Source: Oikopleura dioica (Eukaryota; Animalia; Chordata). Taken from it: DNA of 64,000 nucleotides. Position 1 is the first letter of the stretch; each line of letters begins with the position of its first letter. The notes under the pieces are model-generated. The model was not told where the DNA came from. It worked only from the letters and a program-made list of their open reading frames with translations, and made no database searches. Below are positions 4,051-49,768 of the stretch, in pieces. The translations under genes were made by a program, and so were the position numbers. The stretch spans positions 2,728,001 through 2,792,000 of the forward strand of contig OU015568.1 in assembly GCA_907165135.1 (NCBI GenBank). Direction: 5' to 3'.

Positions 4051-5083
4051 ATGTCGCGGAAAAGAGATAAATGCATTTTTATTTTTGGAATAGTCGCTGC
4101 TTTTTTGTCGCTTTCATTGCTGTTTTCGGCTCCCATGTTTCTGACAAAACAGGATTTTGTTCAAGGACATGATGACAGCAACGTAGACGGTGAAATAAAT
4201 AAATATAAACGTGCTTTCTAATTTTTAGTAACAACTGATGCTACAACGTATAGGACGGAAGAAGCCACTTATATTTTTGACCAAGACAATGATTCATCAA
4301 CTGTTTCTGGCAGTACTTCTTCCGTTGAAAAAGAAACGACCGATTTTCAAACAACTGATAAGGCGGAAGAAATCACTGATAATTCTGAGCAGGTCAATGA
4401 ATCATCAACTGTTCCTGACGGTACTCCTTCCGTTGAAAAAGGAACCACCGATAGCATAACAACTGATATGACGGAAGTAGTCACTGATACTTTTGAGCAA
4501 TTCAGTACACCATCTACTCTGAAAGCCGAATCCACAGAGCCTTCACAAATCGTTCACAAAACGACTGACGCCGAAAAGACAACAACTATTTTCGAGACTG
4601 AATATTCTTCAACTCAAAAGATTCTGTCAACAGTCCCAAAATATTGCGATGGCATCACATGTCTCAATGGCGGAACTTGCAATGAAATGGAAGAAAACTT
4701 TTCTTGCGACTGCATTGACCCTTTTACTGGAGAATATTGTCAAGATCATCCGTGCGATGGATTTTGTCAAAATCATGGAGTTTGCGCTCTTGAATCTGAA
4801 ATCCCGACATGCTCTTGCCGGGACCCATATAAAAGGCTCTAAATTTAAAATTTTTCTTACGTTAGTTATGACAAGTTTTAGAGAGCCCTGATTATAAGTT
4901 GGGGAAAAATGCGAAGATGATGTTTGTAATGGAATCATTTGTGAAAATGGCGGAATCTGTGTTGCCCAAAAGGGACATGCAGCCATTATGCTGCATAATG
5001 GTTATTTTATGAATGATCTGACTTCAAATACTCACAGAAAGTTCACCTGTCAAAAATCACAAAATTGCTTATTCTTTCAATAA
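4051..5083 (+). CDS. Short paralogue of the EGF/C-type-lectin membrane protein (signal-anchor, Thr-rich stalk, 2-3 EGF repeats, lectin domain deleted)
   Basis: MSRKRDKCIFIFGIV... N-terminus, CDGITCLNGGTC EGF repeats. Last exon ends in frame with RKFTCQKSQNC, homologous to the C-terminus of the 5405-7640 gene. Confidence 0.75.
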
Positions 5084-5164
5084 ACAGCAACAAGAAAAAT
5101 CAAATTATTAGTTGCAAGTTTGAATGCTGAGATAATTATTATCTTTATTTTGCGAAAGGAATTT

Positions 5165-5245
5165 TCCTTGTGGCCTGACGATCGGCTTTAAAGCATCCGA
5201 ATTCGATTGAGCCTGAGCATAGCCAGTTGTCGGATCATTTTCTTC
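5165..5245 (-). pseudogene. Duplicated fragment of the penultimate FREM exon
   Basis: About 85% identical to 8155-8235; encodes [21 protein letters not shown] versus [21 protein letters not shown] in FREM. Confidence 0.8.
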
Positions 5246-5404
5246 ATTCAATTTTTTTTTTCAAACTGTATTTGTCTATGCAAAAAGATAACGTTTGATG
5301 CTCCGTTCCGATTATGACAGTATCTGACAATTTTGACGTTCACATTCGAAGATGATACCCTTTTTCTAGACAAATTCGACTCTGACTGTAGCAAGAGAAA
5401 GAGA

Positions 5405-7640
5405 ATGACACGAAAAAGAGATAAATGCATCTTTATTTTTGGAATAATTATGGCTTTTTTGGGGCTCTTGGTGCTTTTCATGGCTCCTCTGTTTCTGACG
5501 AAAAAAGATCTTTTACGCGTTGAAACCCCTTCTTATGACGGTGTGAAAAATTATTTAGAAAAAAGCAATAAATATTGTTTTAGTGACAACTGATGCTTTC
5601 AAAACGCATGATACAGAATTGGTCACTGATATTTTTAAAGAGGACGATGCATCATCTACCCTGAAAGCTGAGTACACAGAGGCCACAGAGATTGTTCTCA
5701 CAACTGTTTTGCCTTGCGCTTATGTTTCTTGTCAAAATGGTGGTAATTGTGTTGTTGAAGCAGCATCTTTTCTGTGCAAGTGCCCGGAGCCTTTTCACGG
5801 AAGCCTCTGCGAGCTCCATCCCTGCGATGGAGTAGATTGCGAGAACAAAGGAATCTGCATCAGTGAATCTGGTAATGCCACATGCTCTTGTCGGGACCCA
5901 TATAGAGGGCTCTTGGATTTCATTTTATGCAATTCTTTAATATATATTAAAAGAGCCCAAAAAATAAATAGGCGATAGATGCCAAACTCATGCTTGCGAG
6001 GCTTTTAATTGCGAGAATGGCGGAACTTGTGTTGTTCAAAAAGGAGCTGGTCGATGCATTTGCGAAGAACCTTTTTCTGGTCAATCCTGCCAAGACCATC
6101 CTTGCGATAACATAACCTGTGAAAATCACGGTGTTTGCGTTATTCAAGCTGGAATTCCAAAATGCTCTTGCCGGGACCCATATAAAGGGCTCTCAAATCA
6201 TATTTTATATAAAGATTTTCGATGAAATGAGAGAGCCCTGGTGATAAACTGGCGACAACTGCGAAACTCATGGTTGTGATGGAATAACCTGCGAAAATGA
6301 CGGAACCTGTGTTGTTCAGAAAAGCAACAGTAAATGCATTTGCAAAGAAAATTTTACTGGTACTCTTTGCGAAGATCACCCTTGCGATGACATTACATGT
6401 GAAAATGGTGGAACTTGTGTTGTGGAAGAGGGAGCAGTAAAATGCAGCTGCGAAGAGACATTTTTTGGTGATTTTTGTGAAAAACATCCATGCGATGGTT
6501 TCGATTGCCAAAATAACGGAACTTGTGTTACCGAATCTGGAGATGCTAAATGCTTTTGTCCTGATCCATACCTAGGGCTCTCTTCATTTCTTTGCATCAT
6601 TGATGCAGCATCAATGACTTTATTATATCGTTTAGAGCCTTTATATGGCGCAATTTATGATTTTTCTTAGCAAAGCCAAGTGAACCCTGATATCAGACAG
6701 GAGATAAGTGTCAAACTCATCCTTGCGATGTAATTTATTGTCAGAACAACGGAAAATGCGAGGTTCAAAATGACGCCGGTTTATGTCTTTGTGAAAAGCC
6801 GTTTTTGGAAATGTCTGCGAACATCATCCTTGCGATGGTATCAACTGTCAAAATGGTGGAACTTGCGATGATCAAAATGAGGTCGGTAAATGCAATTGCC
6901 CAGAGCCATTTTTGGGTGATCTCTGCGATAAACATCCATGTGATGATCTTGAATGCGGTGATCATGGAGACTGTAATGTTGAATCTGGAAATGCTCAATG
7001 TTCTTGTCATGAACCATATGAAGGGCTCTTATCATTTATTTTTGAAAGGCCGTTATTACTAATAACTTATTAGACATGAAACACTACATAAATATTGTCT
7101 CTTATCCTTGCTCGATATGCATATTACTTTGAGCCCTTATATAAGACAGGAGATAAATGCCAAACTCATCCTTGCGATTTAATAACCTGTCAAAATGGTG
7201 GAAACTGTATCGTTGTAAATGGAAACGGTCAATGCAGTTGCTCTGGTTCATTCAGTGGTATATTCTGTCAATGTCCGCCGAATTTTGTACGACCAGCGGA
7301 AAGTTTGAACTGGCAATCGGCAAAAACTTACTGCACTCAAATTGGAGGTTTTTTGGCATTCTTTCGGGACGAGAACGAGTTCAGCATTTTTAAAAACGCT
7401 CGACACGATAATAATGAAGAGTGGATCGGATACCACCAAAAGTACCCCAATAATAATGATATCTACGAAACAGTTGACGGAGAAGAGGCAATTTTCTTCA
7501 ATTGGGATAAGAGTAGCGGTGAACCAAGTAGTGCTGATGAACAATGCGTGAAAATCAAGCCAGCCGAGCAGTTTGTTATGCATGATTCGGGTTGCAACGC
7601 TCTCAGAAAATTTACCTGTATGAAATCGCAAAATTGCTGA
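5405..7640 (+). CDS. Type II membrane protein with ~11 EGF repeats and a C-terminal C-type lectin domain
   Basis: MTRKRDKCIFIFGII... N-terminus; repeated C-x4-C-xNxGxC-x8-CxC-x5-G-x2-C units across exons; lectin motifs LNWQSAKTYC, WIGY, FNWDKSSGEPS, CVKI. Confidence 0.85.
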
Positions 7641-8059
7641 AACTTTTGATATGGAAGAGTTTTTTTTGTGAAAAATGATTTTGCAACACTAATTCAAAAT
7701 AAACACTTATTTCTTTTTTGCCAACAATTTGTTCAGAATTGAAATAATGAAAATACATCTTGAGATATAAAAATGAAAATTCCGAAAATATTTCATATTT
7801 TATTTACAATATTTGAACTTGCATAAGTCGGGAACTAGATACTTTCTTTTGTACAATAATAATGCTGTTTTGACAAATTTTCAAAAAGTAACGTCTTGTG
7901 TGTTTCAGGTTTCTGGGTTGTTCGGGTTCGAATTTGATAGAAAATGAGTTTCAGTAACGATAACTTTTATGATAAGAGGTTTTGAGGTAAAGTACTGAGG
8001 CTTGAGAGGGGTTCTGGTCTTTTTCCCTGGCGAGGAAGACAGGTCGTGTTTTAGAAATT

Positions 8060-11000
8060 CTAGACTTCGGTACCAGATGGTATCGAGGAGTTTGATGAGC
8101 TTGATCCTTCTGAAATTAATACATAAGCTCATTTAATATTTGAAGAGGGATATTACCATGTGGCCTGACAATTGGCTTGAAAGCATCAGAATTCGATCTG
8201 GCCTGGGCATAACCAGTTGTCGGATAATTTCCATCATTTCTTCTTCGGAAGACAACGAGGACAAAGATCGCTAGATTTGAATTAATGCTCTTATTCTAGT
8301 TTCTCTTTCATACCAATAAACAAGATACCGCCAGCAGCCAGGATAATCATCCAGTTAAATTGCGCCTTTTGAGTCTCCATTTCTTCAAATGCTTCTTCTG
8401 ACATCAGACGAATTGGCATCATGTTGGTTCCTCGATCGAAGCCGATTCCGATGTCTTCGGGTGAGGCAGCTCGTCGAACAATTGAGTGTCGTCGGACTCG
8501 TTTAGTCGAAGATCGGACGGTGTAAATTGTGTGGAGGTACCATTCTGCCCCGACATTCACCTGAAAAAATAGAAATAATATCAATAGTTATTTCACTAAA
8601 AACCGAACTAACCTGAAAAAGCGGAGTAGAATCCATTCTGAAACCATCAGATCCTGGCTGCTCGGTCAATCCTTTAGCCGAAGGATCATCGACGGCCAAA
8701 ACAGCATTGAAGGGAACTGAGTTCAAGTTGTCATCTTCTGTGTCTGGCTGCTCTTTATCCTGAAAGCAGTTATTTAGACCACGATAACCAGATTTAATGA
8801 CGTACGATGACTTTGAATCGGTAAAGAAGGAGGTGAGAGTCAGCTAGACATCCATATTCGCTGTTTGCTGGGTTGTATTTGGGAATGTATCCTTCAGATC
8901 CGGAGCACAAGAAGACTTTTTCGATGTTGACGGTAAATCCTTCGCCAAGAGACTGGACGGGATCGACTTGGACTCGCCCATAAATTTGCGCACCTAAAAT
9001 ATCAATAAGCCGATTTCTAGAATAATCGATACATTACCTTCTGGGAAAGCAACATCAGAGCTCTCAGTGACTTGGATGGCCGAGTCGGCAGTCCAAAGAT
9101 CTTTCTTGGAGAGAAGCGAGAAAGTAGTGTTCAAGGAGAATTGTTCAGCAACTGGATCGGAGACTTGTTGGGCACGGAGAGGAAGGGCGAATTCGACTGG
9201 CTCCCTCGGATTGCCTAAAAAGACCATATTAGAAGGATTTTTTCGGGAAATATTTAATTTCAGAAATTTTCTTCCGTTGATTTCTTGTATCACTCTTTTT
9301 TACTCTTTCAACAAATGTGAACTGAATAGGCTCGGGAAGTAAAAATTTAACTTACACTTAGGAGGATCGGAATAAGTCTGATCATGCGAAACTGTGCAAG
9401 GAATCAGTGAAATCTTGTAGTCGCCAGAGTAATCCGTGATAGCATAGTTCGACACGAAGCTCCATTGCTGCTCGGGAGTACTGTAGGTCTTATCGGATCG
9501 AATGAGATTCAGAGTAAAGCTCAATTCAGGGTGCTGGACAGATGTAACCGTCGATTCAGCAGCGCTAGAAAAAAAGTGAGTATTTTGTTGGAGAAAGAGT
9601 CTATTAATAAGAGATCAAGGAGTAAGAATTGTGTGAGTGAGTGATTATTTAGCACCAATGTTATGGAAAATGAACTTACGTGTATCCTACATCAGGATCA
9701 TCCTCGCTAAAAATGAAATGATGAAATGATCATAATGAACGGTGAACTTGAGCTACTAAATGACAAAGAACAAGTGTGCTTCACACGTGAGTTTTCGACT
9801 TTTCTAGAATAATACCTTCCAGGATGTTCCAGGACAAACATTCCAGTGAATCGAGCTACAGTCTTGAATCGGACAACGAGTCGGCCATCAGGTCTGATTT
9901 TCATCGACGTTGGGTAGAAAGTGCCTAAAAGGATGAGAAAATGAGAATTAAGAACTGAACAAACCTGGTAGAGTCGACTCTGGAGGAGTGCCGATTCCGT
10001 CCGTCCACATTTTTGCGGTGTCATAAACGAAAGTCAATCGCAAATTTGTCTCGAGGTCGAAATGTCTCCATGGAATTCTCGTCGGCGAGTGGGAAATGTA
10101 CGAAACATACAGCGGCACCGACAGAGTAACATACGAATGAATCAAGTTCAAGACCTAACAACTATTATTCCTTGTCTATTTGAAAAAGAAAACCTGTCCA
10201 TCTGTTGTGATTTCGCCTCCACAAGCTTGCTGAAGCTCAGACATGTCGTACCATGACTCGAACTCCCAAATACATGCTTCGAGATTGAGGTTTTTATAGA
10301 ATTGAAGAGTTCGCTCAGATCGTAGGTTTCGATCGAACTGGTAAGGCATCAGGTCGTTGTCAGAGTAGATTTTGGGATTGGAGGTAGCATTTGTCAGGAA
10401 GCCAAAATTAGTACGCACTTCTCGCGGAAGAAGCAAATTTGAGCAACTAGAAATATTGTTCAGGGGAACGAAAAAGTGATTCACTAAGGAAGGCTAGCAT
10501 GCAGTTATCGTGCTTATCCTATCAATTTTTGGTTAAAAATCATGGATAAAAGAATTGATTAGTTGAGTTTTGAGCATTTTGATATTAGATTTATGACTAC
10601 GATTTGTCACCTATGCATTTGTGCGAGGAACCCACTGAAATATTTATTATTTTCAGTTCATTTTGTTGTTATCAGCTATGCTGGAGTTCTGCTAGTGAAA
10701 CCCTATGCATACTTAAAATTAAGCAAGTGGATACCTATGCTGTGAGCTTCGGGTGGAATCTTCAGACATTGTGAATTCAAAGTTGGTAAGCTGTTTTGTC
10801 GAGATAAGAGGAATAATGCCATCAGTGTGAGGTAGAATCACAGAGACCTTGATGGTGTTTGGATGATGTTCGTCGTCTCCGTCGATGTATCGGATTTTAG
10901 CGCTGAATGGATCAGCTCCCATGACACCTTAAGGCCAGATGAGTTTCTAGCTTGAATAGAAGAGGATACCTTCTTGTCTTGGAGGACAAATTCCTTCGTT

Positions 11001-14000: not shown

Positions 14001-17000
14001 AGAATTCGGCCATGTCTTGGGAGTTCTTTGATCTGGTATTTGAGGTCTGGATTGAAACTGTCTCTGTCTGTGGCTCTTAGATGCTTCTTTGTTATTGTGA
14101 AGGTTTTGGTTCCGTCCGCGTTTTGCTCGACGTAAGAACCGGGTTTGTTCACCACGAGTTTTGGAATTTCATCATCAACTGGGACAATGTCGATGGGGAA
14201 AGTCACCGCTCCACGATGAGTGTCTTTGAGTTCAGGGAACAAATAGAAGTCATCGTGAGTGCCGTCGGTAACAAGGAATCGGAATTGGTCTTTCGTGCTT
14301 TCGCTGCCGTCATGTTTGTAGGTGATCTTGTTGTTCTTCAAATCCGCAAGAGTGAACTCAGATGCGATAAAAGATCCGTCAAAATTGAGACTTCCATGGA
14401 TTGGGTCACCAACGATTGTGACTCGAACTTGCGAATCATCAGTATCTTGGTCTTCGATGGAAACTTCAAAGGGAGAAATAAGTTTCTCAGCGCCTTCATT
14501 CAGTCTGATTCCGTCGACTTTGACCACTGGAAGCTTGTTATCAATGGGCAGAATATTTACACGGAATGTTCGGTAAACAGTATTCGTTCCATCAGTCACG
14601 GAAAATTCAAAAGCGTCCATTCGAATCTCATCATCTGCCGTGTGAACGTATCGAATCTTTGAACCGACCAGTTCTCGCATCGTGAATGTCGTTCTTTTCT
14701 TGCCGGGGCTGTCAGTAGACTCAAGATGGCCCTTGATCGGCATTTTGTTCACCTTGAAGATCAGATCCAAATCGTTGGAATTCAAGTCTGAGGCCTGAAG
14801 AAGATCAGTAGTGATCGTTCTTCGTCCATCTTCAGGAAGAGTAAGTCCCTCATTGAAGACCATTGGGTACAATTTGTCCCCAGACTCGATTTGGATGAAG
14901 AATTTTCTGTCAATAAGTCGATTGAGACCATCGGTGACTTCGAAAACGAAGTAGTCTCGCTGTTCATCAAGCGATTGAAGCGAATCTAAATTTGTTATCA
15001 AATCGAAATTCCGGATAACTAAGAAATTTCACTACAAAAGACTGGCAAGCAAAATTTTTCTCGGCAGACTTTACAGATGTAAGCGAGCAAACAGGATAAT
15101 ATAAACTACAAGACTATGAATTTTGGTCAAAATCCAAAATTTGGGATGAAGGAAGAATTTAATCAAATGACGAGACTCGGATTCAACAACAAAAAGAGAT
15201 ACTATTACCCGTTGTTGAAGATGACGTAAAGTCACTAAAATAGTCCGCCGGCGACAGGGCGTCTGGATAAAAAACAGTGTTACATAAAGAATATAAATAT
15301 GCGCGTATACTTGGCAGAGCAAGTATACAAAGCTATTCTAAAAAACGAAAAAAGAAGACTCACCTTCTCCACGTTTGTAAATCACTCGATTTTCCCAAAG
15401 TCGGCGCATTTCGAATACATCTCCTTCTGAGAGATATCGACCGTCGGGACTTCCATCGTCCATTCTTAGAGTTCCAAGTCGAGGTGGATGAGTGATGATG
15501 ATCATGAGGTCTTCATCTACACTGTCCAAGTCAGTTACCTTGAAATAATATTAAAAGGCCATAAAATAACTGGAAAATTTTAGAAATAAACTGAATGATC
15601 TGAATTTATAAAACAATACCCTCCTGCATATGGATTGTACATTGCGAATACCTTCAAAATATCAGCTCCGATTCTAGCGCTTCTATCTTCATGAGCCATT
15701 TGAAGTCCTCTGTTGATCTCAACTCTTGGCGTCTCATCATCCACAGGGATAATATCAATTGGGATAGTCTCGTCAGTCACATGTTTTCCATCAGTTAACT
15801 GAAGCTTGATCGAGTCTTCGAAGTTTTCAGAATCGTCATGTTCGAAAGCGATTTCATGAGCCTTGAGCTGCTCACAAGTGAAGGAGTCGATCGATTCTGT
15901 CGATTCAAGGGTGTTCATTCCGAGGTAAATTATCTTTCCAAATTTCGGTGGAGAAGTGACGATGAAGGTTAATTCGTCGAAAGGAATGTCAAGGTCGCGG
16001 CAATTCAAAATGCTTTCGTCCAAATTGAGAATATCGCCTTCGCGAACTCTCCATCTCGAGTATTCAATTTTTGGTTCCTCGTCGTTGACAGGATTGATGA
16101 TCACAGTGATCTTCTTCTGGATGCTCTCATTATTCTGCTTGTCTCTGCAACGGATCCAAAATTCATCCGCAGTCGGCTCGTATCCCTTGTGAATGGATTG
16201 GACGTAGTTGATAAACTCGTTAGGAAGATCGGCTGCTCGGAAATCGGTGATGGCTTCTCCCGCTCTTGATTTCTCGCTGCCGGGGAGAGGAGAGATGTTC
16301 TCAAGGAAACCAAATTCTGGCTGCGGGTCGATTCGGCAAATAATATCTTCTGGGCTCGTATCTGCATCATTGATCTCCAAGTGCGATGGATTCACGGAGC
16401 TCTTGCTTCCTTCATCGACAGTTATGCTTTGAAGGACAGTGACAAGTGGGAACTGATTGTCGACAGGGATGATACGAACATGAGTTATGATTTCCATACT
16501 TTCTGCTCTTCCGTGAATGTCTTGAGCCTGAAGAATGAAGAGATCTTGCACCTCTTCTGGTCCAATTTCTTGGTTGTTGTGCTGGTACACGACTCGTCCA
16601 TTCGCCAAATCAGCGGTTGTTACCGGCTGGGTCATTGCTGGCAGAGCAAGGCCATCTTTCAGCAACTGGCCCTTCTCAGGCTGCTTGACAATTGTAAATG
16701 AGAGGTCCTTGTCAGCAGCTTCTGGTGGTCCCAAGAAATATTTAGCGAGGGTCAGCTCGGTTTGGGATCTTTCAGGAACGACAAGAGTAGTTTCAGACGG
16801 GTTTCGCTGAGTTGGCTCTGGAATCACGGGACGAGGGATGACGACAACGTCGACATTCACAGGGAAGGAGTGCATACCGTCGGTTACTTCGAGTCGAATG
16901 ATGTCTTATTTGGCTAGTCATTGTAAGTGTTATTATTTTCATTGAAAACCATAATTTATTTATTGAGTTGGAGGAAGGAAATATTTTTAAAAAGATTTCT

Positions 17001-20000
17001 TAGACGGCTTATGATTTCAATTTTCAAATAATTCAAATTTCAAGAAATAATAAGATAATGCTGATTCAAAGGGTGCATAAAACATATTTGGCATGAACTT
17101 TCAAGCTCTCCCCTAATTACGTCCGCTGGCATCATGACTTTGCGCGCAATTATGGCAATAAAAGCGCACGCACCTGATTCTAACGCTTATGATTACCTTC
17201 ACTCAATCGCCCTAAAACATCCAAAGACCGTATCAAAAATGATTAGCCAGTTTCCTGAAATATCATCATCACCGTTGTTTGCATATGAAATGTCACCAGC
17301 GACAATATCAAGCTTGAAAAATTCTGATCCAACTTCAATCTTTATATCTGCGATTCGCAGCTCTCCGTGAGCAGGCTCCTCGAGCAGCATAAATGCTAGG
17401 ATCTCATCGGCAGTGTCCATATCCGTTACGTCCAATTTATCTTGCGTCACGGTCACAGACTCGCCCTGCATCACCTGCAGGCCCATGTTGGTAACGACCG
17501 GCTCGGCGTTGTCCATTGGCATGAGTTCGATGGTGAAGCTCTGATCATAGAGTGTATTTTGCATGGCGTCGGACACGTGATAGTTAAACTGGACAACGCG
17601 GCGGACAAGCCCCAAATCTCGGTTCGGAGCTTCGTAGACGATTTTCAAATGGTTGACCATTTGCTGGGTGAATTGCTGAACCTCCTGGTTTGTATCTGCC
17701 CAGAGAAGGCGACCCATTGATTGGCCGGTAGCGACATCGTGAGGTTTTGTCGTGATGTCAATCACAACTTCTTCTGGTGGAGATACATTATCGACAAAGT
17801 TGAAATTTGATTTTCGAAGCGGCGCTGTTTCGTACTCATTCACCCTCATTCCAAGAGTACAGGGGTAGAAATTGCAGCGGGGTGGATCATCATCACGTGG
17901 GTGGATGAAAATTGTGTAGTTGAATGACAAGCCTGTGTTGCCCCGAATGTCTGATGCTGTCAATTCGAGCTCTTCGATTTCAACATTCAGTTGGTTTACT
18001 CCTGCGTTGTGCATGTACTCGACCTGCTTTCTCTGCACTTGCTCGGATGTGAAGGTTCTTGTGACAGTCCATTGCCCCTCATCGTTGAGGACGAACAATT
18101 CTCCTTTGGTGAGAGGATTCTGAAGAGTGTAAAGAGTGGGGCCATTGCTGTCAATATCGACATCTTCGAGGTCAATCGTGACATTGGAATTCTTGTAAAT
18201 TTCAGCGCCGAGATTCTTGATGATCTGAGGAGGTTGATCATCGATTGGAACGATCCAGATAGGGAAAAGAATTTCAATCGAGCTTTCTCCATCCGAAATT
18301 TCCATAATAATGTTGTCAACAAATGTATCAGAATCATCGTGCTGATAGACAACCGAGCATGATTCAATGTCGCTTCCGGAGAACATGTCAATCGCCATTG
18401 GTCCAACAAAAATTTGGCCGTGCTTGGTTCCATCAAGGACACGAAGATTCAAATTTCCCGTTGGAGTGTCTTTGTCTGTCAATTTTAATTCATCCGGACC
18501 GATGCATCGACGACTTCCTTCGTAAAGAATGAGACCATTGTTTTCCATGGCGAATGGTGTGTCATTCTCCATCGCCTGGATTTTGATGTAGAAAGGGACC
18601 CAAGGAGAGGTTCCTCCATCTTCGTCGTGGATCCGGAAATTGACCTAAGAATGAAGCTGATTATTAGATTCAAAAGATCTTTTTTTGAACGAGTTTTTAT
18701 GTTAAATGGATGGTTTTTGGCATATTTTTAACTTGGCGGAATATAAAATGATGTTAATAAAGTGTCAAATGGGATGGCAATGGTCAGGTGTGTGTCCTAA
18801 GGCTTGTGCCCCGGGGCGTTACCTTCATTGTCGACTGTATTTGGGGCTATATTGAAGACTGTTAATGACAATATAAAATTGACGAAAAACACAGGACGGA
18901 AACGAGGGCGCGATAGGGTCAAAATGGGGTTGTTAACCCTACTATGGTCTTTTCCGCCCGATACTTCAAAAAAAAAGAAATGTCAAAACATTTCAACTCG
19001 AAAATTTTTGAAGAAAATTTCTTACAGAAAGGAGTCGGTCAAAGGCAGAATCGGCCGCTGGAGGTTGGAAGGCAATTTTGTTGTCAAGCAGTTCCGATTG
19101 GTAAAAGCTCAGAATTGGTCTCGTTCGATCATCAGTGGAAACAAAGAAGCCGGATTTCGGTTGATCATCAAATTCCACGACAAGTAGTCTTTCGTCTGTT
19201 TCGTAGTCTTTTCCGAATAGAACGTCTCGTGTCAGGGCAGTAAGGATAAATTGATCGACGTAGAGTTTCAACTCCGCTTGAGGATCGACATTTGGCGGCT
19301 CGTTTTTCGCAGCAGCGCGAATGTTGATCTGGAGGTCGAACCATTCTCGCTCGTGAACGAAGCCGGACTTGTCTTCAATCTCGATCAGAAGCGGTTGATG
19401 ATCCTTGTCAGGAGTGCCAGTAGCGCCAGAATGCCTGTAATAGATGCCGGAATTAACAAAATCGTCGCAGGTAGATCTGACAGGAGCGTAGGCCAATTTT
19501 CCGTATTTGGGCCAGATTCCAATTTTCGGATTATCAGACAAAAAACGCCGGTCGAAGGGCGGCGATCCTTCGAAAATTGGATAAACTTCGCCGAGCAATT
19601 CTTGATTGTCGATGTAAACTCGCTCTGTTGGGCGGTATGCCTCGGGAATTGTGACGAAGCATTCGAGCTCGGTACTGTCGGAGTAACTGTAATCATCGGA
19701 GGAGATGAAGGAGGTGATCGATTTTGTCGGGTCGAAGTCGATTTTGAGGATGGTGGAGTCGATTGCTTTGGATTCTCCGGCGAGTCGTGTTACTTCTTTT
19801 TGAGAGTTCTTTTACTTTTTAACCGGCAATTCCGGGCACTAATTTACTGAAATATCTTGAGACATCATACCCTAAGCTGCAATAATTCTCAAAAGAAGGT
19901 CCTTAACGGAGCCCACCAGGGTGGCAAATCCGTAGTTATTGATGAACGTGACACTTTTTAACGACCGTAAAAATGTCCCTTTTGAACTTACTCGGCTGAA

Positions 20001-21027
20001 CAAAAATCTCGTAAAAATGCCGAAAACGGTCTTTGTTCCTGACGGCTTTCATTTCTAACAAAATTAGAATTCTTAAGAACTCTTCCTAAGTCATTAAAAT
20101 CTTTAATCAAATCGTGCGGCGTCAGCAAGACTTCAATTTCGATTTGAAGTGGTAAAATTTTCTTCGTCGTCCTCGTTTCATAATGAACTTGTAAAGATAT
20201 CCTGTCGCTTCTGGGCTCTGCTCGCCCGTAATGCTGGTAAAATACTTCATCTTCGGTGAAATCGCATGGGAAGCGATCGACGTTCAATTCTCCAACAACC
20301 TGTTCGATGGGAGAGGGGAGGACGCGAACTTCGCACGTGTTCCCTCCTTCCGCAGAAATTTGTAGATGGGGCCATAAGGGGCTTGATCGGCCAATCGGAA
20401 CCTGAAAAATTTGATTTGAGAAATTTTGGGAACCATAAAAGAAAATCGAAAATTTTGTGTATTGTTTTTATGTCTTAACTGATTTGATTGTTAAGACTCT
20501 AGATTTTGAAGAATTGGACAACCAATCATTGCTGTGTTATGAGAATTCTTTACTAAAACGATTTTACAGAATAAGTGAACTGAAACACTTGTCAATGGGA
20601 CGCTTCAAGAAGCCCAAAAAGCTCCTTGAATGCCTCTCAAAATCTTCCGAAACAGGACAACTTGAACCTGCTTTATTTGACAATTTCGATATGAATCAAT
20701 GAAAGAGTACCTGTATTTTTTCATTTTTGGTGACAATTCGGGCAGGCGCGCGGTCCGGAGGTGCAAAGCCTGTTTCAGTTTTGAAAATGTAGTCTTTATC
20801 GCGACGATCAGGTGACTCACAAGGCGATTTAGAAAAGGCAAAAGTGATAAGCTCGATGCGATAAAAAATTATGGTCTGGGAAAAATCTGTACTCAAATAC
20901 CTAAATTCGCTTTTTTTGAAAAAAAAAAGTTCAATTCAAAATGAAGCCGCATGCGGCTTTTATATTTTATTTTCAAAACCATTCCTGTCTCGGCTGCGGC
21001 CAGTCCAAGAAGACTGAGCCACCTCAT
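8060..21027 (-). CDS. FREM2: FRAS1-related extracellular matrix protein (FREM2/ECM3-like): signal peptide, CSPG repeats, Calx-beta domains, TM, PDZ-binding tail
   Basis: [14 protein letters not shown] signal exon at 21027; N-terminal VPIGR...CEVRV...FPCDF; CSPG repeats (IVYQHDDS, DSFxFxVTDG); Calx-beta (F...V.E..G.v.v.v.R.G, GLDYI); TM segment near 8250-8340; C-terminus SGTEV* at 8060, like FRAS1/FREM2. Confidence 0.92.
12445..12675 (+). CDS. 62-aa secreted peptide precursor nested antisense in a FREM intron
   Basis: Exons 12445-12528 and 12571-12675, GT-AG intron of 42 nt. Product [62 protein letters not shown]. Confidence 0.6.
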
Positions 21028-24516: not shown

Positions 24517-26669
24517 ATGAGTATTCCGGCTTTTGCGGCAGCCGCGGCTTACAAGGAACTGGATATTAATTAACAAAGTGACGCCCTTATGGAAGACCAT
24601 GAAATAATGCGTTTTGTATCCAGTGGCAGGCAACAGAAACGCTCCAACAAAAGAAATCCCATGTCACCTTGAACCCTGTCTTCAAAAATGACCGATTTAT
24701 AACCACTCTTCTTACCGTAGCTCCTGTTATGGCCCTTTCGGTTTTGCTGGTAAGCGTCGTTTTTACCATGAGAGTCCTGAAAACATAAATTAAATCCTCT
24801 TTTTACAAACTTGATTAAGGTCATTGCGCCTGCAGGTTTCACGCCAGAAATTCTAACTTGCTCCTTGCGGACTAAAAAAGTCAACGAAACGGGCTCAACC
24901 TGCGACACTTTTCACGTCGCGGATCACAATTTCATCAATAACTACTGTTTCTCCCGAATGGCGCATTACGAAGTCGACGAATTCGGCAACGTTGATTTGG
25001 AATCAAAAACGACACTTAGGTTTTTGAAGCTTTTTCCTTATATTTTGTTGGCTTTGACGACCCTTGGAGCTTGGGTAAGTGATTTTTCTGCAGAGATAAG
25101 TGGGTAATTGATGGGCTATTCTTCAGACTGGTATTTGCTGGGAAATAACGAGCATTAAAAGAATAGGGCAAGGTAAGAAATGCAATCAGAAAATGTTGAT
25201 ATGCTCAAAAACGAGTTTTATATTTCCTCAAGCAAAAATTAAGCCGAATATCTGATGGACGGAATAGAAGAAGCAACAGGAGAACTTATCGCTGGCCTGA
25301 AAGCTGTGTCGAATATCTTGAACAAGCCAAAGAAAAAGATCCTCCAAGAACAAAACTTGGAGAAAAAGTCCATTTACGGAAGCATGATGTCGATCAACAA
25401 AGCAGGGCCAGAACAGAAGCAAGCGATGCGACATAATCGGCAAGCTCGAGCGTCTGTCAGACAGCGAATCGCATCGAATTTGACAAGAGAAACTTCCAAG
25501 TGTCAAGAAAAGCCGAATGGTTTGGCGAGAAAGCGATCCATTTCTGGAACTGAAGACGATCCTCTCAAGAAAAGGGCTGAATATCTTAACTGAAAATATA
25601 GCGCCCTGTTTTGTTTAGCGACAATTATTTTCGACAGCCCTTGAGAAGATTGATATCCGGATAGAAGACGAAGTGATAAGCCTAAAAGGCGACAGCCCTC
25701 AAAAACCTCCTCTCGGAACTCTGGCGATCAAAGAAGTCACTAAAAACCTCTCCTCATCCATCTACGAGTCTTTAGAAGAGCACTGGAAGAAAAACGACAC
25801 TCGAGCAAAATTCATGGAATTGGAAGATCTAATGGAGGCGCGAGCTGGATCATCAGATTTTCTGACGACGATTTATTTGAATCGGGTGAACTGCTTGATT
25901 GTTAATATTGTTGCGGGAGGAGTTTTGTTCCACTGGTTTGTTTATCGAATCTTTGACTTGAACTCTTTCAATTGCTTGTTGCCGGAGTATTATCACTATC
26001 AAAGTAAGTCAGATTTTATGAATTAATGAAATATTTATGAATGAGATGAAATATTATTAATGAATACGCTTTCGACCAGGCTTGTAGCCATCGTTGAGCT
26101 GACTAGAGATTTTCAAAATATTTGAAGCATAAATTTTTAATACGAAAAGAATTTTTGATATAGTTATGGTTTTTTTATTTCCGAATTTTTATCGTCTATT
26201 CATGAGCATCATTTTTAGCTTCGAATGGTGAATTCTGGCAGACAACAAGATGTTATTTCAAGCCGCTTGGATCCTGGCTTTTGGTTTCATTCCTGACATT
26301 TACCCTCTATTGTTTCACATTCCTGCTCCAAATCTACTTTTGGTACATCAGCGTCAACAAATGGAAGAAAGCCTACACACTTATTCAATATCTGCCCATA
26401 ACATGTGCCATGGCTGAGGATAGCCTATCAGATTTGCATGTTCTGATGGCGAAGATTTCCGAAAACGACGGCGCTAGAAAGGTTAGTCTCAAAATAATTC
26501 AGCGTCAAAAATAATTTCTAAGACCCTGTCAATGTGTGATAAAGTCCTTTCCGCTTTGAACAAAAGCGAACACGAAAAATTCCTGCTTGTTCTTCTCGAA
26601 GTCATCGTCTGGGGAGAAACAGATGAGAAAGTCGACGGACTCGTCAGTAAAATACTTCGCGCCAAATAG
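24517..26669 (+). CDS. PANX: Pannexin-family channel
   Basis: Spliced MSIPAFAAAAAYK/ATET...NDRFITTLLTVAPV; HNFINNYCFS...LRFLKLFPYILL (pannexin FVDSYCW...LHKFFPYILL); FNCLLPE; LIQYLP...DLHVLMAKISEN. Stop TAG at 26667-26669. Confidence 0.85.
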
Positions 26670-35248: not shown

Positions 35249-35562
35249 GACCCGAAGAATAACTGTATTCTCTTTGTTCAAATGAATGTTCATTTGTGTA
35301 AATTTGAAAAATAAACTCATCTTTTTATAATACTTTGTCTTTCTTCTGCTTTCAAGAAAAAAGTCTCCTCAAAAAATCATAATCTTGACGAAAAACAAGC
35401 GATTTTTCGAAATCCTCTTATCAAACAATCGCACCAGCGCGGTAAAATCCCCTCTCGCGCGCCCTCAAACAATTCTAGAACTCTCCATAAAATCTCCATC
35501 GCTCAATTAGTGCTCCATCAAACTTCGATAAGAAGTCCAAGCCTAAAACAAAAAGACGAGAA

Positions 35563-36383
35563 ATGAAGCTTTTCGCTTACCTCGCTGCCCTCGCTGTCGC
35601 TGAAGAGATCAAAGACGACACTTGCTACTCAAATGGTGAGGAAGTCCCATGCTCTGCTCTTGCTCGATCTCGAAATCCGACTGAGGTGGATCGAAGCGTC
35701 TCTGGTGAGCGAAGATATGCTGATTTGAAGGCAATCGCGAAGAAAATCTGGGGCGTCAACGGACTGAAAGGCAAATACAAGTTCGACGAGCGAAAATACT
35801 GGGCCTACGGTTGCCACTGCTACCTTCTTGGCGACCGACCACTCAGCGAAATGGGCACTGGAGCACCAAAGGTAAATTTTGAGATGTTAATTGTTTCCTT
35901 ATTTTCTCTTCCCAGGATGCTCTTGACAACAAGTGCAAAGCCTACAAAGACTGCCAAAAGTGCGTCCGGGAAAAGCACGGCGATACCTGCATCGGAGAAT
36001 TCACGAAATACACCTGGAAGTATTCTGGAAAGCGTGGTGCGTTCGAATCTGTGAATACTGAGGGTTCCTGCGAGCGTGAACTCTTCCAATGCGATCTTCA
36101 ATTTGCCAAGGATACCTTTGCCGAGAAGGATATCTTCAGCGATGAATACCACTTCTTCTGGGGCGGATTTGACAACCGAGATCCTGACAACTGCCCCTCC
36201 AACGGTGGTATCCCAGTCGAACATGAGTGCTGCGGTGGTTACGATCGAGAATAGTAACTTTTTCCTTCTCGGAATATTTTTAATCGCAATTTTAGCCATT
36301 GGATCGGACTCAATAAGAAGAAGTGCTGCCCAGCTTCAAATGGCTATTCCGGAGTCGTTGTCGATAAAGACGAATCATGCTGA
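35563..36383 (+). CDS. Secreted PLA2-fold protein, catalytic residues substituted (paralogue B)
   Basis: Tandem duplicate of 34430-35248 with the same intron positions and the same YGCHC/DNKCKAYKDC motifs. Confidence 0.85.
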
Positions 36384-36738
36384 AAAATAATGCTCAATCG
36401 CGATGATTTATCCTTATCGCAAAAGCATTTCTGTCCTCTGTATATTCGGATGTAATAAAGATCTTGTTCTTTTTGTAAAACATCTCTTGTACCATGCGTG
36501 TTGGGTTTTATGTTTCCACTGACTGGACTTCCTCAACCGTGTTGGTGACTATTTTTTCCAGCAAGTGTCAATTTTTAACAACTCCCGCGCCGCATCCTTT
36601 GCGAGTTCCTTACAACCTGTTCTGGGCCGAGCCAGCTGTTCGGGGGTACTAATCTCTCCTCGGAATAAAAGAGGATGCTGTTTCCTCTTTTCCCCAGTCC
36701 TTGGAGAGATAGAATCTTTTTTTATCTAGCCTGCAAAA

Positions 36739-42677: not shown

Positions 42678-43348
42678 TTATTTCTTACTTTCTTTAATAA
42701 ATATCGCGTTTCTTGAATCAAGAAAAAATTTCGTCTCTTCTGTAAAAAAACTGATAATTTGCATCTCATTCCGCAAAACATGTTGAATTTTGAGTGTTCT
42801 CTCTTCATTTTAGGGAGAAATTCGAGAGTAAGGTACTTACTTCGGTCGTTCTAAAAGGCTTTTCGCACGAACATCAACCTACAATTTGGAACCTCTTGCT
42901 TTATAAAGAGGCGTCTTGCTGTTCTTGTATTTAGATCTTGTTCACGAAGGCAGAAATCAGCGGAAAATGAAGTTATTTTAAATAACTTATTTACTAAATA
43001 CCTAAGGTAATTTACATCAGCTTTAAGCTGGCTAAGAATTTAGAAGATCACTTTTACCTCTTTTCTAACATTGAAATGAGTATTTTTTACAAACAACAAT
43101 TGCATGGTGAAAATACTCTGGATTGCTTTTTTTGTTTTAGAAAAAGCTGCTTACATGACTGGCTTTCTATCATGCTTCCGCAACAAAAACTTGTTACGAG
43201 AGATAATTTGTAATCCAAAACGACGATTAATTCATAAAAATAACTAGATGGCGCCTTTTTGCTTTAGAAGGAACTCTTTATAAAGAACTCTTTTTCCTCT
43301 GCCCGCATTTTAATTTCAACAAGAGAACCAAGAGACTGATTTCAAATA

Positions 43349-43926: not shown

Positions 43927-44044
43927 GTCGTCAGAAATGCTCGATTTCTCCGATAATTATGCAAAATCATAAATAATCGTTTCACCTAACAGAATTAATA
44001 AAAATACAAATGAAAATTAATTTTGTGATTTTTTATTTAATAAT

Positions 44045-45470: not shown

Positions 45471-45780
45471 GAAAAACTTTTTTGTTTCTGGCGTGAGAAT
45501 CCCTCGATCTTTGGAATATATGCAGTTCTTCGAGGACGGTCATATTTGGCAAGCAGTAAATGGACGTTCGTTACCTAGTTTCGGCATTGGAAATTTATCT
45601 TGGAAATGATGACTTGGTGATTTTCCTACTCTTTCCTACTGGAAAAGATAGAAAGAATCTGAAATTCGTCACTTTGAAAGGGAAAATGATGACTTTTATT
45701 AATGAAAATCTGCAAAAACAAAAAAAACTATTTGCTTATTTATCATTTATTTCAACAAAACAACAGTCAAAAAGGCGGAG

Positions 45781-47669
45781 CTATAAATTGAACATTACAA
45801 TTCTTCTATCTGTCGGACTCCAATTCTCTTCCGCCGAAGAAATATTCGGACTCAGCAAAACATCTTTTCTGTAACCGAATATCTTCATCAGGACTTTGCA
45901 TCTTGCTTCAATTTGCGAAATCTCCGTGGCATTGAATTTCTCAGCGTCGAGCCCTTTTTTCCAGCCGTCAAAAAGCTCGGCTTCTGTTTTTCCTTTGTTG
46001 ATACTAAAGAAGGATTTTCTTACTTATAAGATTGTTAACACAAGATCTTAAAATATAACAACTTAACAATTTTCCAATCTCTCCTGAATGTGTTGCTTCA
46101 TAAAACTTTTCAACAAACTCTTTGCTCATCTCGACATCAAGCTTCTTATAAATCTGGGCTGTCAGTTCAGCCGGAAATCTGGATATATCTTCATAGCGAA
46201 CAAAAATGACATTTTGAGCAATTTTGGAATCAAGGAAGAAATCAAGTGTTTTTTCGCAATCGTCGAATACTTTCTCGACAGTCTGCTCGGCCTTGTAAAA
46301 ACTCCTTAATTTTCGCCTTGATAAGAGCATGCTTCTTGGATCCCGGACGAGTCGGATGATTTTCAAATTGATTTTTGGCTTCAATAGGTGATAAAGATCC
46401 TCCGGACCGTCCAGACGAAATTCTTTTATTGCGACGCCTTTTTTCTCGCCGCAGAACCGGATAAGTTTTTCTTTTCCTACTTCGGTTTTAAACGGGTCGG
46501 AGCAGTTTTTGCACCACATCTTTGCTTCTTGACAAAACGGCGGGCTGCAAAGCGTTTCTGAACCGAGCCAATGGCCAATAGTGTGAGAAAATTGAACACG
46601 ATCTTTTGGGTTGTTTTTGCGATTTCTTGGCACTTGACAACTGTAGGCTTCCTCGAGGATTTCTCGGCGTTCTGTTAGACTTCCGGTTAGAGGCTCGAAA
46701 TACTTTCATTATGGCTTTGAAGGGGTAAGATAATTTAAGAAAGAGATTTATAAAAAGCCTTTCATAAAGAAAATCGGGATTCTGGTCAAAAATTGAGCCA
46801 AGAAACGAAGACCCAGAACGGAAGGAAGCTGAAATATAAATATTCTTTCTTAAAGTTCGCTCATCCACCATAAACCCCGTCGAAGAGATGATGAAGTCAG
46901 AGATCTCTTTTGTTTTCCAAGAATACAATCCAATAAAAGGTATCTTTCAAAGATTTGAAATTTCTCTTGAAAAAAATGTCTCAATACTGTTCAAATCAAT
47001 TCCAAAAGAAACATAAAAAGAAAACAATGTTCAGACGTCATTTCTCGAAGTGCGACAATCTTTGATGCTAATCGACAGAAATGTTGGCAAAAAATGGCAG
47101 CTTTTATAGCTAAGTTAACTGTCTCTGAACTGCGGACATAAACCAGGATGAATAAAAAATAATTTAAGGTAAAGTAAGCATGACGGTCAAATATGGGCGA
47201 CGTTTTTCAAGAATGGTTCTCTGGAAGTTTGATTTTTGCCTGACCAACTTGAACTCTCTTACGCTTCGATATGAATTCGATTTTCTCTATCATAATTTTT
47301 TTGATATGACCAGTACTCCGAAAAATCATTTTTCCGGAATCTGATTTGAACAAATACTGCCTTGTTATTCAAGATTGCTCGAAAAAATATTTTCAAATCC
47401 TTTCCAAAAGAAAAACCAAGGAAAAAAATTTTGGAGTAATCTGTTGAGACGTCATCTCTGAAAGTTCGAATATAACCTACCTTTCGACCAAACACGTCGT
47501 TCATAAAATAGGCGCAATAAAAATTTATTACTTTGGCCCGTTGATACTTTTGCCCAGTCTGAACAACCTGAGCGAATATTAAGAAAAGTACTGTTTTGAT
47601 AACGTTACCTGTAATGATACGTGTTTTAATCCCAAACGAAAGTTTTTGCTGTTGTGGTATTTGATACAC
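45781..47669 (-). CDS. Carbohydrate (Gal/GlcNAc/GalNAc-6-O) sulfotransferase, copy 1
   Basis: 5'-PSB motif IYISASFRSGSSFLGSIFDQNPDFLY/YFEPL; 3'-PB motif KIIRLVRDPRS; FVRYED. 5' end approximate. Confidence 0.85.
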
Positions 47670-47838
47670 AAATTTTATACATATTATACACTCGCCAAAA
47701 AACCCTTTTCCAGAAAGAATCTGAAATTCGTCATTTTGAAAGGGAAAATGATGATTTTTATTTACGAGAATTTATATAAACAGAATAACTTACTCATTTA
47801 TCATTTATAACTTAAAACGATCAGTCAAGAAGGCGGAA

Positions 47839-49768
47839 CTAAAAATTTACGGTTACAATTCTTCTATCGCTCGGACTCCAATTCTTTTCGGCCGAAGAAA
47901 TATTCTGACTCAGCAAACCATCTCTTCTGTAGCCGAATATTTTCATCAGAACTTTGCATCTTGCTTCAATTTGTGAAATCTCCGTGGCATTAAATTTCCC
48001 AGCGTCGAGCCCTTTTTTCCATCCGTCAAAAAGCTCGGCTTCTGTTTTTTCTTTATTGATACTGAAGGAGGTTTTTTTCACTCATAAGATTGTGAACAGA
48101 TGATTATTGAAGACCTATCATCATTACCACTTTATATTTATTCAATCTTTTCCTGAATGCGTCGCTTCATAAAAGTTGGTTGAGAACTCTTTGCTCATTT
48201 CGACATCAAGTTTCTTATAAATCTGAGCTGTTACTTCAGCCGGAAATCTTGATATATCTTCATAGCGAACAAAAATGACATATTTAGCAATTTTGGAATC
48301 AAGGAAGAAATCAAGTGTCTTTTCGCAATCGTCGAATACTTTGTCGACGGCCTGCTCGGCTTTGTATACTTTGCTTAGTTTTCGCCTTGATAAGAACATG
48401 CTTCTTGGATCTCGCACAAGTCGGATGATTTTCAAATTGATCTCTGGCTTCAATAAGTGATAAAGATCCTCCGGACCGTGCAGACGAAATTCTTTTATTG
48501 CGACGCCTTTTTTCTCGCCACAGAATTGAATAAGTTTTTCTTTTCCAACTTTGGTTTTGAATGGGTCCGGGCATTTCTGGCACCACATCTTTGCTTCTTG
48601 ACAAAATGGCGGGCTGCAAAGCGTTTCTGATCCGTACCAGTGGCCGATAGTGTGAGACAATTGAACACGATCTCTTGGGTTGTCCTTGCGATTTCTAGGG
48701 AGTTGGCAACTGTAGGCTTCTTCGAGAATTTCTCGGCGTTCTGTAAGACTTCCCGTTAGCGGCTCAAAATACTTATCATGGCTTTTGAGACCGAATAAGA
48801 TGAGTCTGATAATGGGTTTTTTAATCAAAAGTAAGGGGGGTTCTGAAAAGCCTTTCATATAGAAAATCAGGATTCTGGTCAAAAATAGAGCCAAGAAACG
48901 AAGAACCAGATCGGAAAGACGCTGAAATATAAATATTCTTTCTTGAAGTTCGTTCATCAAGCGTAAACCCTGTCGAGGAGATGATGAAGTCGGAGATCTC
49001 TTTCGTTTTCCAAGAATACAGTCCTATGAAGGGTATCTTTTAAAGATTTGAAATTGTCAATTTCTCTTGAAGAAAAAGCAGAATAATGTTCAAATCAATT
49101 CCAAAAGAAAAATTGGGAGGTAACAATGCTTATGCTTAGACGACATCTCTCTAAATGCGACAATTTTTGTAATAATTGACAGAAGTGCTGGCTAACAAAT
49201 GGCAGCAAAAATGCTCTTGACTTATGCGGACGTATATCAAGATAAATGAAAATAATTGAGGGTAAAGTAAGCATGACGGTGAGACCTGGTCGAAGAATGG
49301 TTCTCTAAAGTAAAAATTTGATTTTTGCCTGACAAATTTCCATTCTCTCTCTTGCTTCGAAATGAAGTAGATATTCTCTATCATACTTGTCTCGGCCATG
49401 GAAAGTTTATTTTCACGACTTTTAGCGGACGTCTGGAGATAGAAATAATTGATATCATATCAGCACGTGTGAAATCATTTTTCTGGAATCTGATTTGAAC
49501 AAATATTTCCTTGTCATTCAAGATCGCTTATTAACAGTAAGTTCAAATCATATAACCAAAGCCTTTGGTGCAAAGGAAAAAATTTTGGATAAATTTGTCC
49601 CCGGTCAAGACCAATTTGAGTCATTTGTTTATTTATAATTATATTCGTATGTACAGATAAAGCAACGATTACATAATAGAAAGAAACAGAAATATTTTTA
49701 CTTATATTTTTCCAATTTTTCTTGAAGTTTTTTGATTTGAATCGCTCTCTCTGCATTATGCAATGCAT
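47839..49768 (-). CDS. Carbohydrate sulfotransferase, copy 2 (tandem duplicate, ~2.06-kb offset)
   Basis: Same motifs as copy 1 (SASFRSGSSFLG, YFEPL, LVRDPRS, VRYED); 5' exons more divergent and start uncertain. Confidence 0.75.

Follow-up and report, generated by a model that had tools for sequence, protein, structure and literature searches.

Introns of the larvacean Oikopleura dioica that do not start with GT (11-12%) and the missing minor spliceosome of this animal have been known since 2010. As to the recognition of such introns, recent work on the sister genus reportedly points to U2AF paralogues and to methylation of small nuclear RNAs. Here, a stretch of 64,000 nucleotides from O. dioica (contig OU015568.1 of assembly GCA_907165135.1, positions 2,728,001 to 2,792,000), referred to as the window, was analysed for non-GT introns whose two ends can base-pair and thereby close the intron as a hairpin. 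In this species, non-canonical introns of the type G(A/C/G)-AG represent 11-12% of all introns (PMC8008620, PMC7072748), and it has been pointed out that the non-GT introns need closer examination (PMC8008620).

Introns with complementary ends are known from several other systems. In Fritillaria, terminal inverted repeats of introner transposons serve as the non-canonical splice sites (10.1101/2025.08.15.670264; PMC11282704). Fritillaria borealis is also a larvacean without a U12 spliceosome, and its introns derived from introners or miniature inverted-repeat transposable elements (MITEs) are likewise non-GT, occupy lineage-specific positions and carry inverted repeats at their ends. There, however, the terminal repeats themselves constitute the splice sites, most ends are AG-AC or AG-AT, and the elements form multi-copy families with target-site duplications and account for more than 90% of the introns (Henriet et al. 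2019, as summarized in 10.1101/2025.08.15.670264 and PMC11282704). The introns of the window, in contrast, have G(A/G/C)...AG ends, their arms are specific for each gene and offset by 0-5 and 5-13 nt, and neither copies nor general duplications were found. In teleosts, the complementary boundary tracts of (AC)m-(GT)n introns form a bridging helix by which pairing of the splice sites is enforced, and U2AF2 is not required (Lin et al. 2016, PMC4691745). The hairpin introns of the window similarly appear to lack a pyrimidine tract, but their arms are unique 6-11-mers next to non-GT donors, whereas the teleost introns are GT-AG with dinucleotide-repeat arms.

Nonconventional introns of Euglena also have non-GT ends and pair just inside these ends, with short fixed spacers of 3 nt on the 5' side and 5-6 nt on the 3' side, and this pairing was shown to be necessary for excision; they contain a CAG/CTG motif, dominate the genome and are removed by a machinery that is not known (PMC12501133). 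In the introns of the window, the CAG/CTG motif is absent, G at +1 and the terminal AG are mostly kept, and the spacers are variable (0-5 and 5-15 nt). Non-canonical introns of Amoebophrya share inverted repeats of 8-20 nt between their ends, with a predicted hairpin joining the exon boundaries, but they belong to introner families and have direct repeats of 3-5 nt over the boundaries (PMC7789003), neither of which was seen in the window. Yeast intron helices (Goguel and Rosbash 1993 and others, cited in PMC4691745) shorten the effective distance between splicing signals as well, but they occur in long GT-AG introns and join sequence following the 5' site to sequence preceding the branch point, not the two ends of a non-GT intron. 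For O. dioica, a rule that a helix closes the non-GT introns was not found in the full texts accessible to searching, Denoeud 2010 and Henriet 2019 being outside that search. Such a rule, connecting a non-GT start with a closing helix, would provide a cis-acting explanation of intron recognition, connect Oikopleura introns with the transposon-derived ones of Fritillaria and with the splicing of fish and Euglena introns that depends on structure, and improve gene prediction in larvacean genomes.

Pairing of intron ends

The window is gene-dense larvacean DNA, and introns were reconstructed from reading frames, paralogues and homologues. In total, 51 introns were rebuilt, 35 of the GT-AG type and 16 with a non-GT start. 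A preliminary description, made from the sequence alone, had listed 14 non-GT introns. All of these were recovered with identical outer coordinates (4835 and 48856), and the list turned out to be too short by two hairpin introns, 47002..46944 and 49101..49037, one in each of two sulfotransferase genes. As separate cases, however, the 14 introns reduce to eight independent families, and all 16 to nine, with the five EGF introns and the sulfotransferase introns counting as paralogues. A G(A/C/G) donor, with G at +1, and an AG acceptor are present in 15 of the 16 introns. The description had assigned GA/GG/GC donors to its list. EGF intron 6188-6251 ends in TG, not AG, and for the 5' end of pannexin intron 5 comparison with a relative that lacks this intron favours AA-AG or GA-AA over GC-AG. 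Non-GT introns are 59 to 350 nt long and exceed GT-AG introns in length (median 72 versus 47 nt, p = 0.03).

For each intron, positions -3 to +18 at the 5' end were compared with the last 30 nt, limited to half the intron length, and pairing was expressed as the longest contiguous Watson-Crick match and as RNAduplex energy. The 35 GT-AG introns yielded stems of 3-6 bp and energies from -0.2 to -7.0 kcal/mol. The medians of the nine non-GT families ranged from 6 to 11 bp and from -8.1 to -14.8 kcal/mol, so that the energies do not overlap (Mann-Whitney p = 2.4e-6 for stem as well as for energy). With length-matched controls, namely the 14 GT-AG introns that have at least 59 nt, p was 4e-5. In a strict subset, consisting only of introns with ends set by homology or domain consensus, the difference persisted (p = 0.004 for stem, 0.0013 for energy), again with full separation of the energies. 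A stem of at least 6 bp together with a duplex of -8 kcal/mol or lower was detected in 14 of 16 non-GT introns and in none of the 35 GT-AG introns, in line with the earlier statement that the latter lack comparable pairing. Complementary arms of 6-11 bp are found in 15 of the 16.

When the 5' end of one non-GT family was combined with the 3' end of another, at least 6 bp were obtained in 17% of the cases, while nine of the ten families analysed at this stage reached this value with their own partner. In RNAfold predictions, 12 out of 13 short non-GT introns had the closing helix in their minimum-energy fold; among 13 GT-AG controls, there were at most weak AAGG/CCUU contacts. These results confirm that a non-GT start is linked to a helix closing the intron ends, and the strength of the result is the consistency across families, not the single stems.

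A census by bridging of open reading frames (ORFs), combined with a hairpin-first scan of the window, was abandoned because of hundreds of chance 6-7-mers across spans of 200-500 nt. The codon model was weak for AT-rich genes, and the hairpin-first scan contributed only three additional GT-AG controls.

Table 1 Genes of the window and non-GT introns of the window and of related contigs
Feature	Position (strand)	Ends	Length (nt)	5' arm / 3' arm	3' tail (nt)	Stem (bp)	Duplex (kcal/mol)	Basis and remarks
EGF/C-lectin genes, two in tandem	4000-7640 (+)
EGF-A intron	4835..4898 (+)	GG-AG	64	GGCTCT / AGAGCC, or CTCTAAA / TTTAGAG		7	-12.0	closing helix in minimum-energy fold, z = -2.4
EGF-B intron	5908..5971 (+)	GG-AG	64	GGGCTCTT / AAGAGCCC	13	8	-15.5	z = -2.55
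EGF-B intron	6188..6251 (+)	GG-TG	64	AGGGCTCTC / GAGAGCCCT		9	-20.0	no AG acceptor; z = -3.3
EGF-B intron	6576..6700 (+)	GG-AG	125	3' arm GAACCC, degenerate		4, contiguous	-10.3	UAGGG/CCCUG terminal helix in minimum-energy fold
EGF-B intron	7024..7149 (+)	GG-AG	126	AAGGGCTC / GAGCCCTT		8	-14.8
FREM-like gene	~21030 down to 8290 (-)
FREM first intron	20770..20984 (-)	GA-AG	215	GTTTTGAAAAT / ATTTTCAAAAC	8	11
FREM intron	19793..20085 (-)	GA-AG	293	AGAGTTCTT / AAGAACTCT	10	9
FREM intron	16905..17254 (-)	GA-AG	350	TGGCTA / TAGCCA	6		-13.3
Pannexin gene	24517-26665 (+)
Pannexin intron 1	24556..24629 (+)	GA-AG	74	ACTGGATA / TATCCAGT	5			closing helix in minimum-energy fold, z = -2.3
Pannexin intron 5	25570..25648 (+)	GC-AG (5' end 25576) or AA-AG (5' end 25570)	73-79	A(A)GGGCTG / CAGCCCT(T)	6-7			helix in minimum-energy fold
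PLA2 genes (two) and myosin heavy chain gene	34400-42700 (+)
Sulfotransferase genes, two in tandem	45787-47040 and 47845-49145 (-)
Sulfotransferase 1 intron 0	46944..47002 (-)	GA-AG	59	GATTTGAA / TTCAAATC	8	8		reading frame and flanking stops; same arms in paralogue and L005
Sulfotransferase 1 intron 1	46703..46763 (-)	GA-AG	61	GGCTTT / AAAGCC		6
Sulfotransferase 1 intron 2	46023..46083 (-)	GA-AG	61	AGATTG / CAATCT	6			reading frame and paralogy; other donors possible in this copy
Sulfotransferase 2 intron 0	49037..49101 (-)	GA-AG	65	GATTTGAA / TTCAAATC		8		reading frame and stops
Sulfotransferase 2 intron 1	48772..48856 (-)	GA-AG	85	GGCTTTT / AAAAGCC	8			homology to P0011; arms retained in L005 (donor GC) and L007
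Sulfotransferase 2 intron 2	48081..48152 (-)	GA-AG	72	AAGATTG / CAATCTT	5			6 bp retained in L005 orthologue
L001 FREM intron	1910..2093	GC-AG	184			10, perfect
L001 FREM intron	6301..6534	AA-AG or GA-TA	234			10, perfect
L008 pannexin intron	2714..2772	GA-AG

Boundaries of the introns

Ends were set without recourse to the hairpin for the EGF introns, FREM intron 17254..16905, sulfotransferase intron 1 and the acceptor of pannexin intron 5. The five EGF introns occupy the same point of the repeat, and their ends follow from the EGF consensus CxCxxxYxGxxC. For 6188-6251, an AG end is impossible because in-frame stops force the 3' cut within ACTG|GCGAC; a homologue search for an orthologue of the last EGF-B exon, by which this GG-TG intron could be tested, found none. 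Outside the arms, no BLAST match among the five introns was obtained, and their loops are too diverged to be aligned. In four of the five, the copy without AG among them, 13 nt separate the CCC of the 3' arm from the cut. In 6576-6700, a perfect partner, AGAGCC, is located upstream at a distance of about 65 nt from the 3' end. The reading frame of EGF-B shifts at a run of five T residues (6802-6806, plus strand), where ...PFFGNVCEHHPCDG... would be recovered by one extra T; the shift is either genuine or due to misassembly of the homopolymer. EGF-A (4000-5080, plus strand) is a shortened tandem copy of EGF-B with the same signal/transmembrane start, in which one EGF repeat with a hairpin intron is directly followed by the last residues of the C-lectin domain.

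The FREM gene could be compared with an orthologue on a 27-kb metagenome contig, L001, which shows 70% protein identity and a different intron map. A continuous ORF in one species limits the intron ends of the other to a shift class, with no input from splice sites or hairpins. By this approach, boundaries were fixed in the window for five GT-AG introns and one GA-AG intron (17254..16905), and in L001 for two GT-AG and two non-GT introns. For 17254..16905, GA-AG is the sole AG-ending option in the best-scoring shift class. At the position of the first intron (20984..20770), the L001 ORF runs on continuously, but the sequences are too diverged for homology to fix the ends. For 20085..19793, the chosen ends rank 16th out of 85 by homology; the caution expressed in the preliminary description, that pairing had helped to select FREM ends, is justified here. 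Both non-GT introns of L001 sit where the ORF of the window is continuous, and all 11 intron positions common to both sequences are GT-AG. An unconstrained joint solution of the shared-position introns was discarded, as intron sequence was drawn into exons, and these junctions were read directly. The L001 intron 6301..6534 holds internal TTGTCTAAA / TTTAGACAA repeats.

Pannexin intron 5 is missing from a contig of the Joint Genome Institute (JGI), L008, from the transcript-encoded protein P0039 and from Bergen proteins, which fixes its acceptor and rules out an alternative one at 25618. An exon of the window gene is 80% identical to the Bergen protein CBY16423.1. P0039 is a pannexin of 513 residues encoded on the Logan contig L010 (metatranscriptome, run ERR1719223), which was regarded as a transcript because its 1802 nt are too short to contain introns. 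Both P0039 and the Bergen protein CBY24725.1 read ...AAAAAYK|ATETLQ..., the junction orthologous to that of pannexin intron 1 (GA-AG). Another part of P0039, ...SMKE|PQKP..., corresponds on L008 to the GA-AG hairpin intron 2714..2772, and the donor supported by the transcript is a GA that precedes the stem by four bases, in preference to a GT located within the stem six bases further downstream. L010 represents a third lineage, with DNA identities of about 78-83% to L008 and 74-96% to exons of the window; it supports the junction positions rather than the exact genomic context. The L008 intron is the sister lineage's own, located 45 nt downstream of the site of pannexin intron 5 of the window.

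All three introns of both sulfotransferase genes are of the non-GT hairpin type, and neither gene has a GT-AG intron. At intron 1 of gene 1, the junction DFLY|YFEPL agrees with the intronless relative P0011 (DFLYYFEPL), by which GA-AG is confirmed. The two introns closest to the 3' ends of the genes were deduced from frame, paralogy and a stop codon that immediately follows THSGKD in three sequences; owing to this stop, intron 2 of gene 2 has no upstream GT donor. The paralogue match of these genes is labelled Oikopleura dioica OKI2018_I69. No full-length protein model for either gene was present among the searched proteins, and automatic annotation may overlook genes of this kind.

Geometry and conservation of the arms

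Within the intron, the start of the 5' arm is 0-5 nt from the cut (overall range -3 to +6); in the EGF family and with one register of pannexin intron 5, this arm extends into the exon by 1-3 nt. Between the end of the 3' arm and the 3' cut there are 5-15 nt, mostly 5-10 nt. A fixed '2+6' register is not supported by these data. Compared to the 6-12 bp stems and the 5-13 nt distance to the 3' splice site reported previously, the pairing was thus found in nearly the same form, with stems of 6-11 bp and a somewhat wider spacing. The usual start of hairpin introns is G|GA; GG and GC are less frequent, AA is a possible further start, and the introns mostly end in AG after an A-rich tail. Most families other than EGF start GAA(A)G, corresponding to the common GUAAG except for the +2 position. 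By eye, the tails between the 3' arm and the cut appear A-rich, for example AAAAAAAG, TTTGAAAG and AATAAG, and contain no pyrimidine tract, while the GT-AG introns have the usual T-rich tract at their end. In sequence, the arms vary between genes, as described before, and pairing, not sequence, is the common feature. A core of GGCT...AGCC is nevertheless present in four of 12 families (EGF, FREM 17254, sulfotransferase intron 1 and pannexin intron 5); GGCT was not encountered in the corresponding region of 42 GT-AG introns.

In paralogues and in the relatives L005, L007 and L008, the arm cores are unchanged, while loops, tails and the donor dinucleotide vary. Arms are identical over three to five paralogues or orthologues, compared to 34% invariant columns in the adjacent loops. 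For sulfotransferase intron 1, GGCTTT(T)/(A)AAAGCC is found in both paralogues and in two metagenomic relatives, with variation in the loop and at positions +2 to +4 (GAAA, GCAA, GAAC). The 8-bp stem of sulfotransferase intron 0 occurs in three sequences, and its 8-nt tail differs in sequence but not in length. Conservation of the arm cores with changing loops, tails and donors argues for selection on the helix over a neutral scar. A few base changes were also observed within the helices: the EGF introns 5908-5971 and 6188-6251 have T:A and C:G, respectively, as their inner pair, one EGF copy has lost an inner pair and gained two outer ones, and in L008 some of the bases that form the helix of pannexin intron 1 are different.

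Proposed function and origin

Taken together, it is fairly probable that the hairpin-closed non-GT introns are a distinct class of real introns, arisen by insertion, in which the helix keeps the splice sites together and is retained by selection. In the pre-mRNA, the helix would hold a weak 5' site beside a 3' site devoid of a tract, and a permissive U2-type larvacean spliceosome could then join the correct ends even where the signals for U1 and U2AF are poor. Such an advantage in splicing would allow selection to keep the helix. The class probably began as small terminal-inverted-repeat insertions that were spliced out and later shrunk to the arms. This structural interpretation is the best-supported one and rests on association and conservation. 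The association, the helix geometry, the conserved arms, the lineage-specific positions and one orthologous junction in RNA are established; the role of the helix in splicing and the transposon origin are inferred. Conceivable, though rather doubtful, is that about a tenth of Oikopleura introns follow a structural splicing code, in which the closing helix, not GT or a pyrimidine tract, selects the sites to be joined. The 5' cut would then precede the helix by a few bases, and the 3' cut would use the first suitable site 5-13 bases past it. If true, such a code would turn transposon-like insertions into introns at once and would explain GA, GG, GC, AA and non-AG ends together.

Regarding the origin, every hairpin intron that could be compared with L001 or L008 is lineage-specific or common to close relatives only. 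The three FREM introns are missing from L001, pannexin intron 5 from L008 and P0039, and the sulfotransferase introns from P0010 and P0011. The two long L001 introns, 1910..2093 and 6301..6534, fold MITE-like along their full length (-52 and -54 kcal/mol, respectively), and judged by these sequences a transposon origin of both is plausible. Hints of target-site duplication were obtained for 1910..2093, which is flanked by a 10-bp direct repeat with 8/10 matches, and for three EGF copies (3-4 of 6). For the introns of the window, transposon origin followed by shrinkage with the arms kept is reasonable, not demonstrated.

A number of observations speak against the proposed function or origin. 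Paired ends had been described for all 14 introns of the original list; 13 indeed have a contiguous Watson-Crick stem of 6-11 bp, but the stem of 6576-6700 is degenerate with only 4 bp. In 7024-7149, the terminal helix is absent from the minimum-energy fold. The comparison of duplexes by donor class suggested in the preliminary description separates the energies when run on this window, but single 6-bp stems are marginal relative to shuffles (P = 0.06-0.15), and whole-intron fold z-scores are about 0 for the AU-rich sulfotransferase introns. The claim that all boundaries were fixed by homology and frame was too strong for four to six of the 14, and the ends of four introns are not independently fixed (FREM 20984..20770 and 20085..19793 and the two 3' sulfotransferase introns). 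Considering its frameshift and the non-AG intron 6188-6251, EGF-B may be decaying. Three bulk RNA runs with the same species label (X4-X6) yielded no usable junction for 5300-11299; they match the window only in short patches of 90-99% identity and therefore stem from a diverged lineage. The choice of RNA runs is critical for this genome due to cryptic-species divergence. The contrast between arms and loops is partly circular, the arms being defined as the shared core, and true covariation is scarce: the inner EGF pair and the rebuilt helix of pannexin intron 1 are examples, but most pairs never vary. The region from +3 to +10 must also meet U6, and a stable helix there could hinder or help. 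The suggestion that the arms are terminal-inverted-repeat scars of introner-type insertions fits only the two long L001 introns; the test for target-site duplication of the window introns was negative overall (1.68 matches of 6 for non-GT and 1.64 for GT introns), and BLAST searches against the window, L001, L005 and L007, less than 100 kb, detected no family copies of hairpin introns.

Other explanations of the paired ends have to be considered. The arms could be leftover terminal inverted repeats without a role in splicing, from elements that happened to supply non-GT ends. The MITE-like folds of the two long L001 introns, the direct repeat flanking one of them and the lineage-specific positions are consistent with this, as is the finding that the non-canonical splice sites of Fritillaria are introner terminal inverted repeats (bioRxiv 10.1101/2025.08.15.670264). 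Neutral persistence is nevertheless unlikely, as both arms have been retained in EGF paralogues with unalignable loops and in L005, L007 and L008 despite changes of donor, tail and loop; in addition, window-specific GT-AG introns have no arms, and the lack of general target-site duplications and, in the less than 100 kb searched, of family copies is not in favour of insertion scars. A different possibility, which we judge to be quite improbable, is excision by a modified spliceosome or another machinery for which the helix sets both cuts at fixed spacers, as in Euglena. Three introns are not G?-AG without extra residues (6188-6251, L001 6301..6534 and pannexin intron 5 as AA-AG or GA-AA), the tails look A-rich without a pyrimidine tract, L008 uses the GA before the stem and not the GT within it, and the spacers, with 2-5 and 5-10 nt, resemble those of the Euglena code (3 and 5-6 nt; PMC12501133). 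The spacers, however, vary over 0-5 and 5-15 nt, 11 of 12 families can be read as G...AG, most of them starting GAA(A)G and thus close to the normal GUAAG, and the transcript is from a third lineage, about 78-83% identical to L008 in DNA, in which the skipped GT may not exist.

That the true introns are ordinary, and the hairpins a product of chance or of boundaries chosen to fit them, is largely refuted and appears very unlikely. Such an artefact is suggested by two FREM and the 3' sulfotransferase boundaries, which lack independent fixing, by six-base AT-rich matches in 6 of 35 GT-AG introns and by the many chance hits of the hairpin-first scan. Against it, the strict subset with ends fixed by intronless relatives separates fully in energy, the cross-pair and shuffle controls agree with real pairing, stops leave no GT donor in several cases, and the transcript supports two GA-AG junctions. 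Excision of inverted-repeat elements from somatic DNA instead of RNA splicing is hardly credible. Only the inverted-repeat architecture is in its favour; assembled DNA of several lineages, genomic as well as metagenomic, contains the elements, and most of them start with G and end with AG like spliceosomal introns. Programmed DNA elimination is not known to occur in Oikopleura. A mirtron interpretation was rejected as well, because the stems comprise only 6-11 bp around large open loops and do not form a whole-intron hairpin resembling pre-microRNA.

Other features of the window

Apart from the genes described above, a tRNA-Ile gene with the anticodon AAT (2152-2225, minus strand) is located inside a GT-AG intron of about 260 nt in an olfactomedin gene, on the same strand as its host. 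In a C-lectin gene, a putative GT-AG intron of 30 nt (27583-27612, minus strand) seems to be needed to bridge three in-frame stops; it would sit at the lower limit of intron size. Tandem repeats were detected at 58266-59513, where about 20 copies of a 56-57-nt unit are arranged with a change of orientation at about 58861, and at 59859-60754, where a 142-nt unit is repeated 6.3 times. The region containing these arrays is flanked by 40-nt GC-rich repeats in inverted orientation (56643-56774 and 62390-62560).

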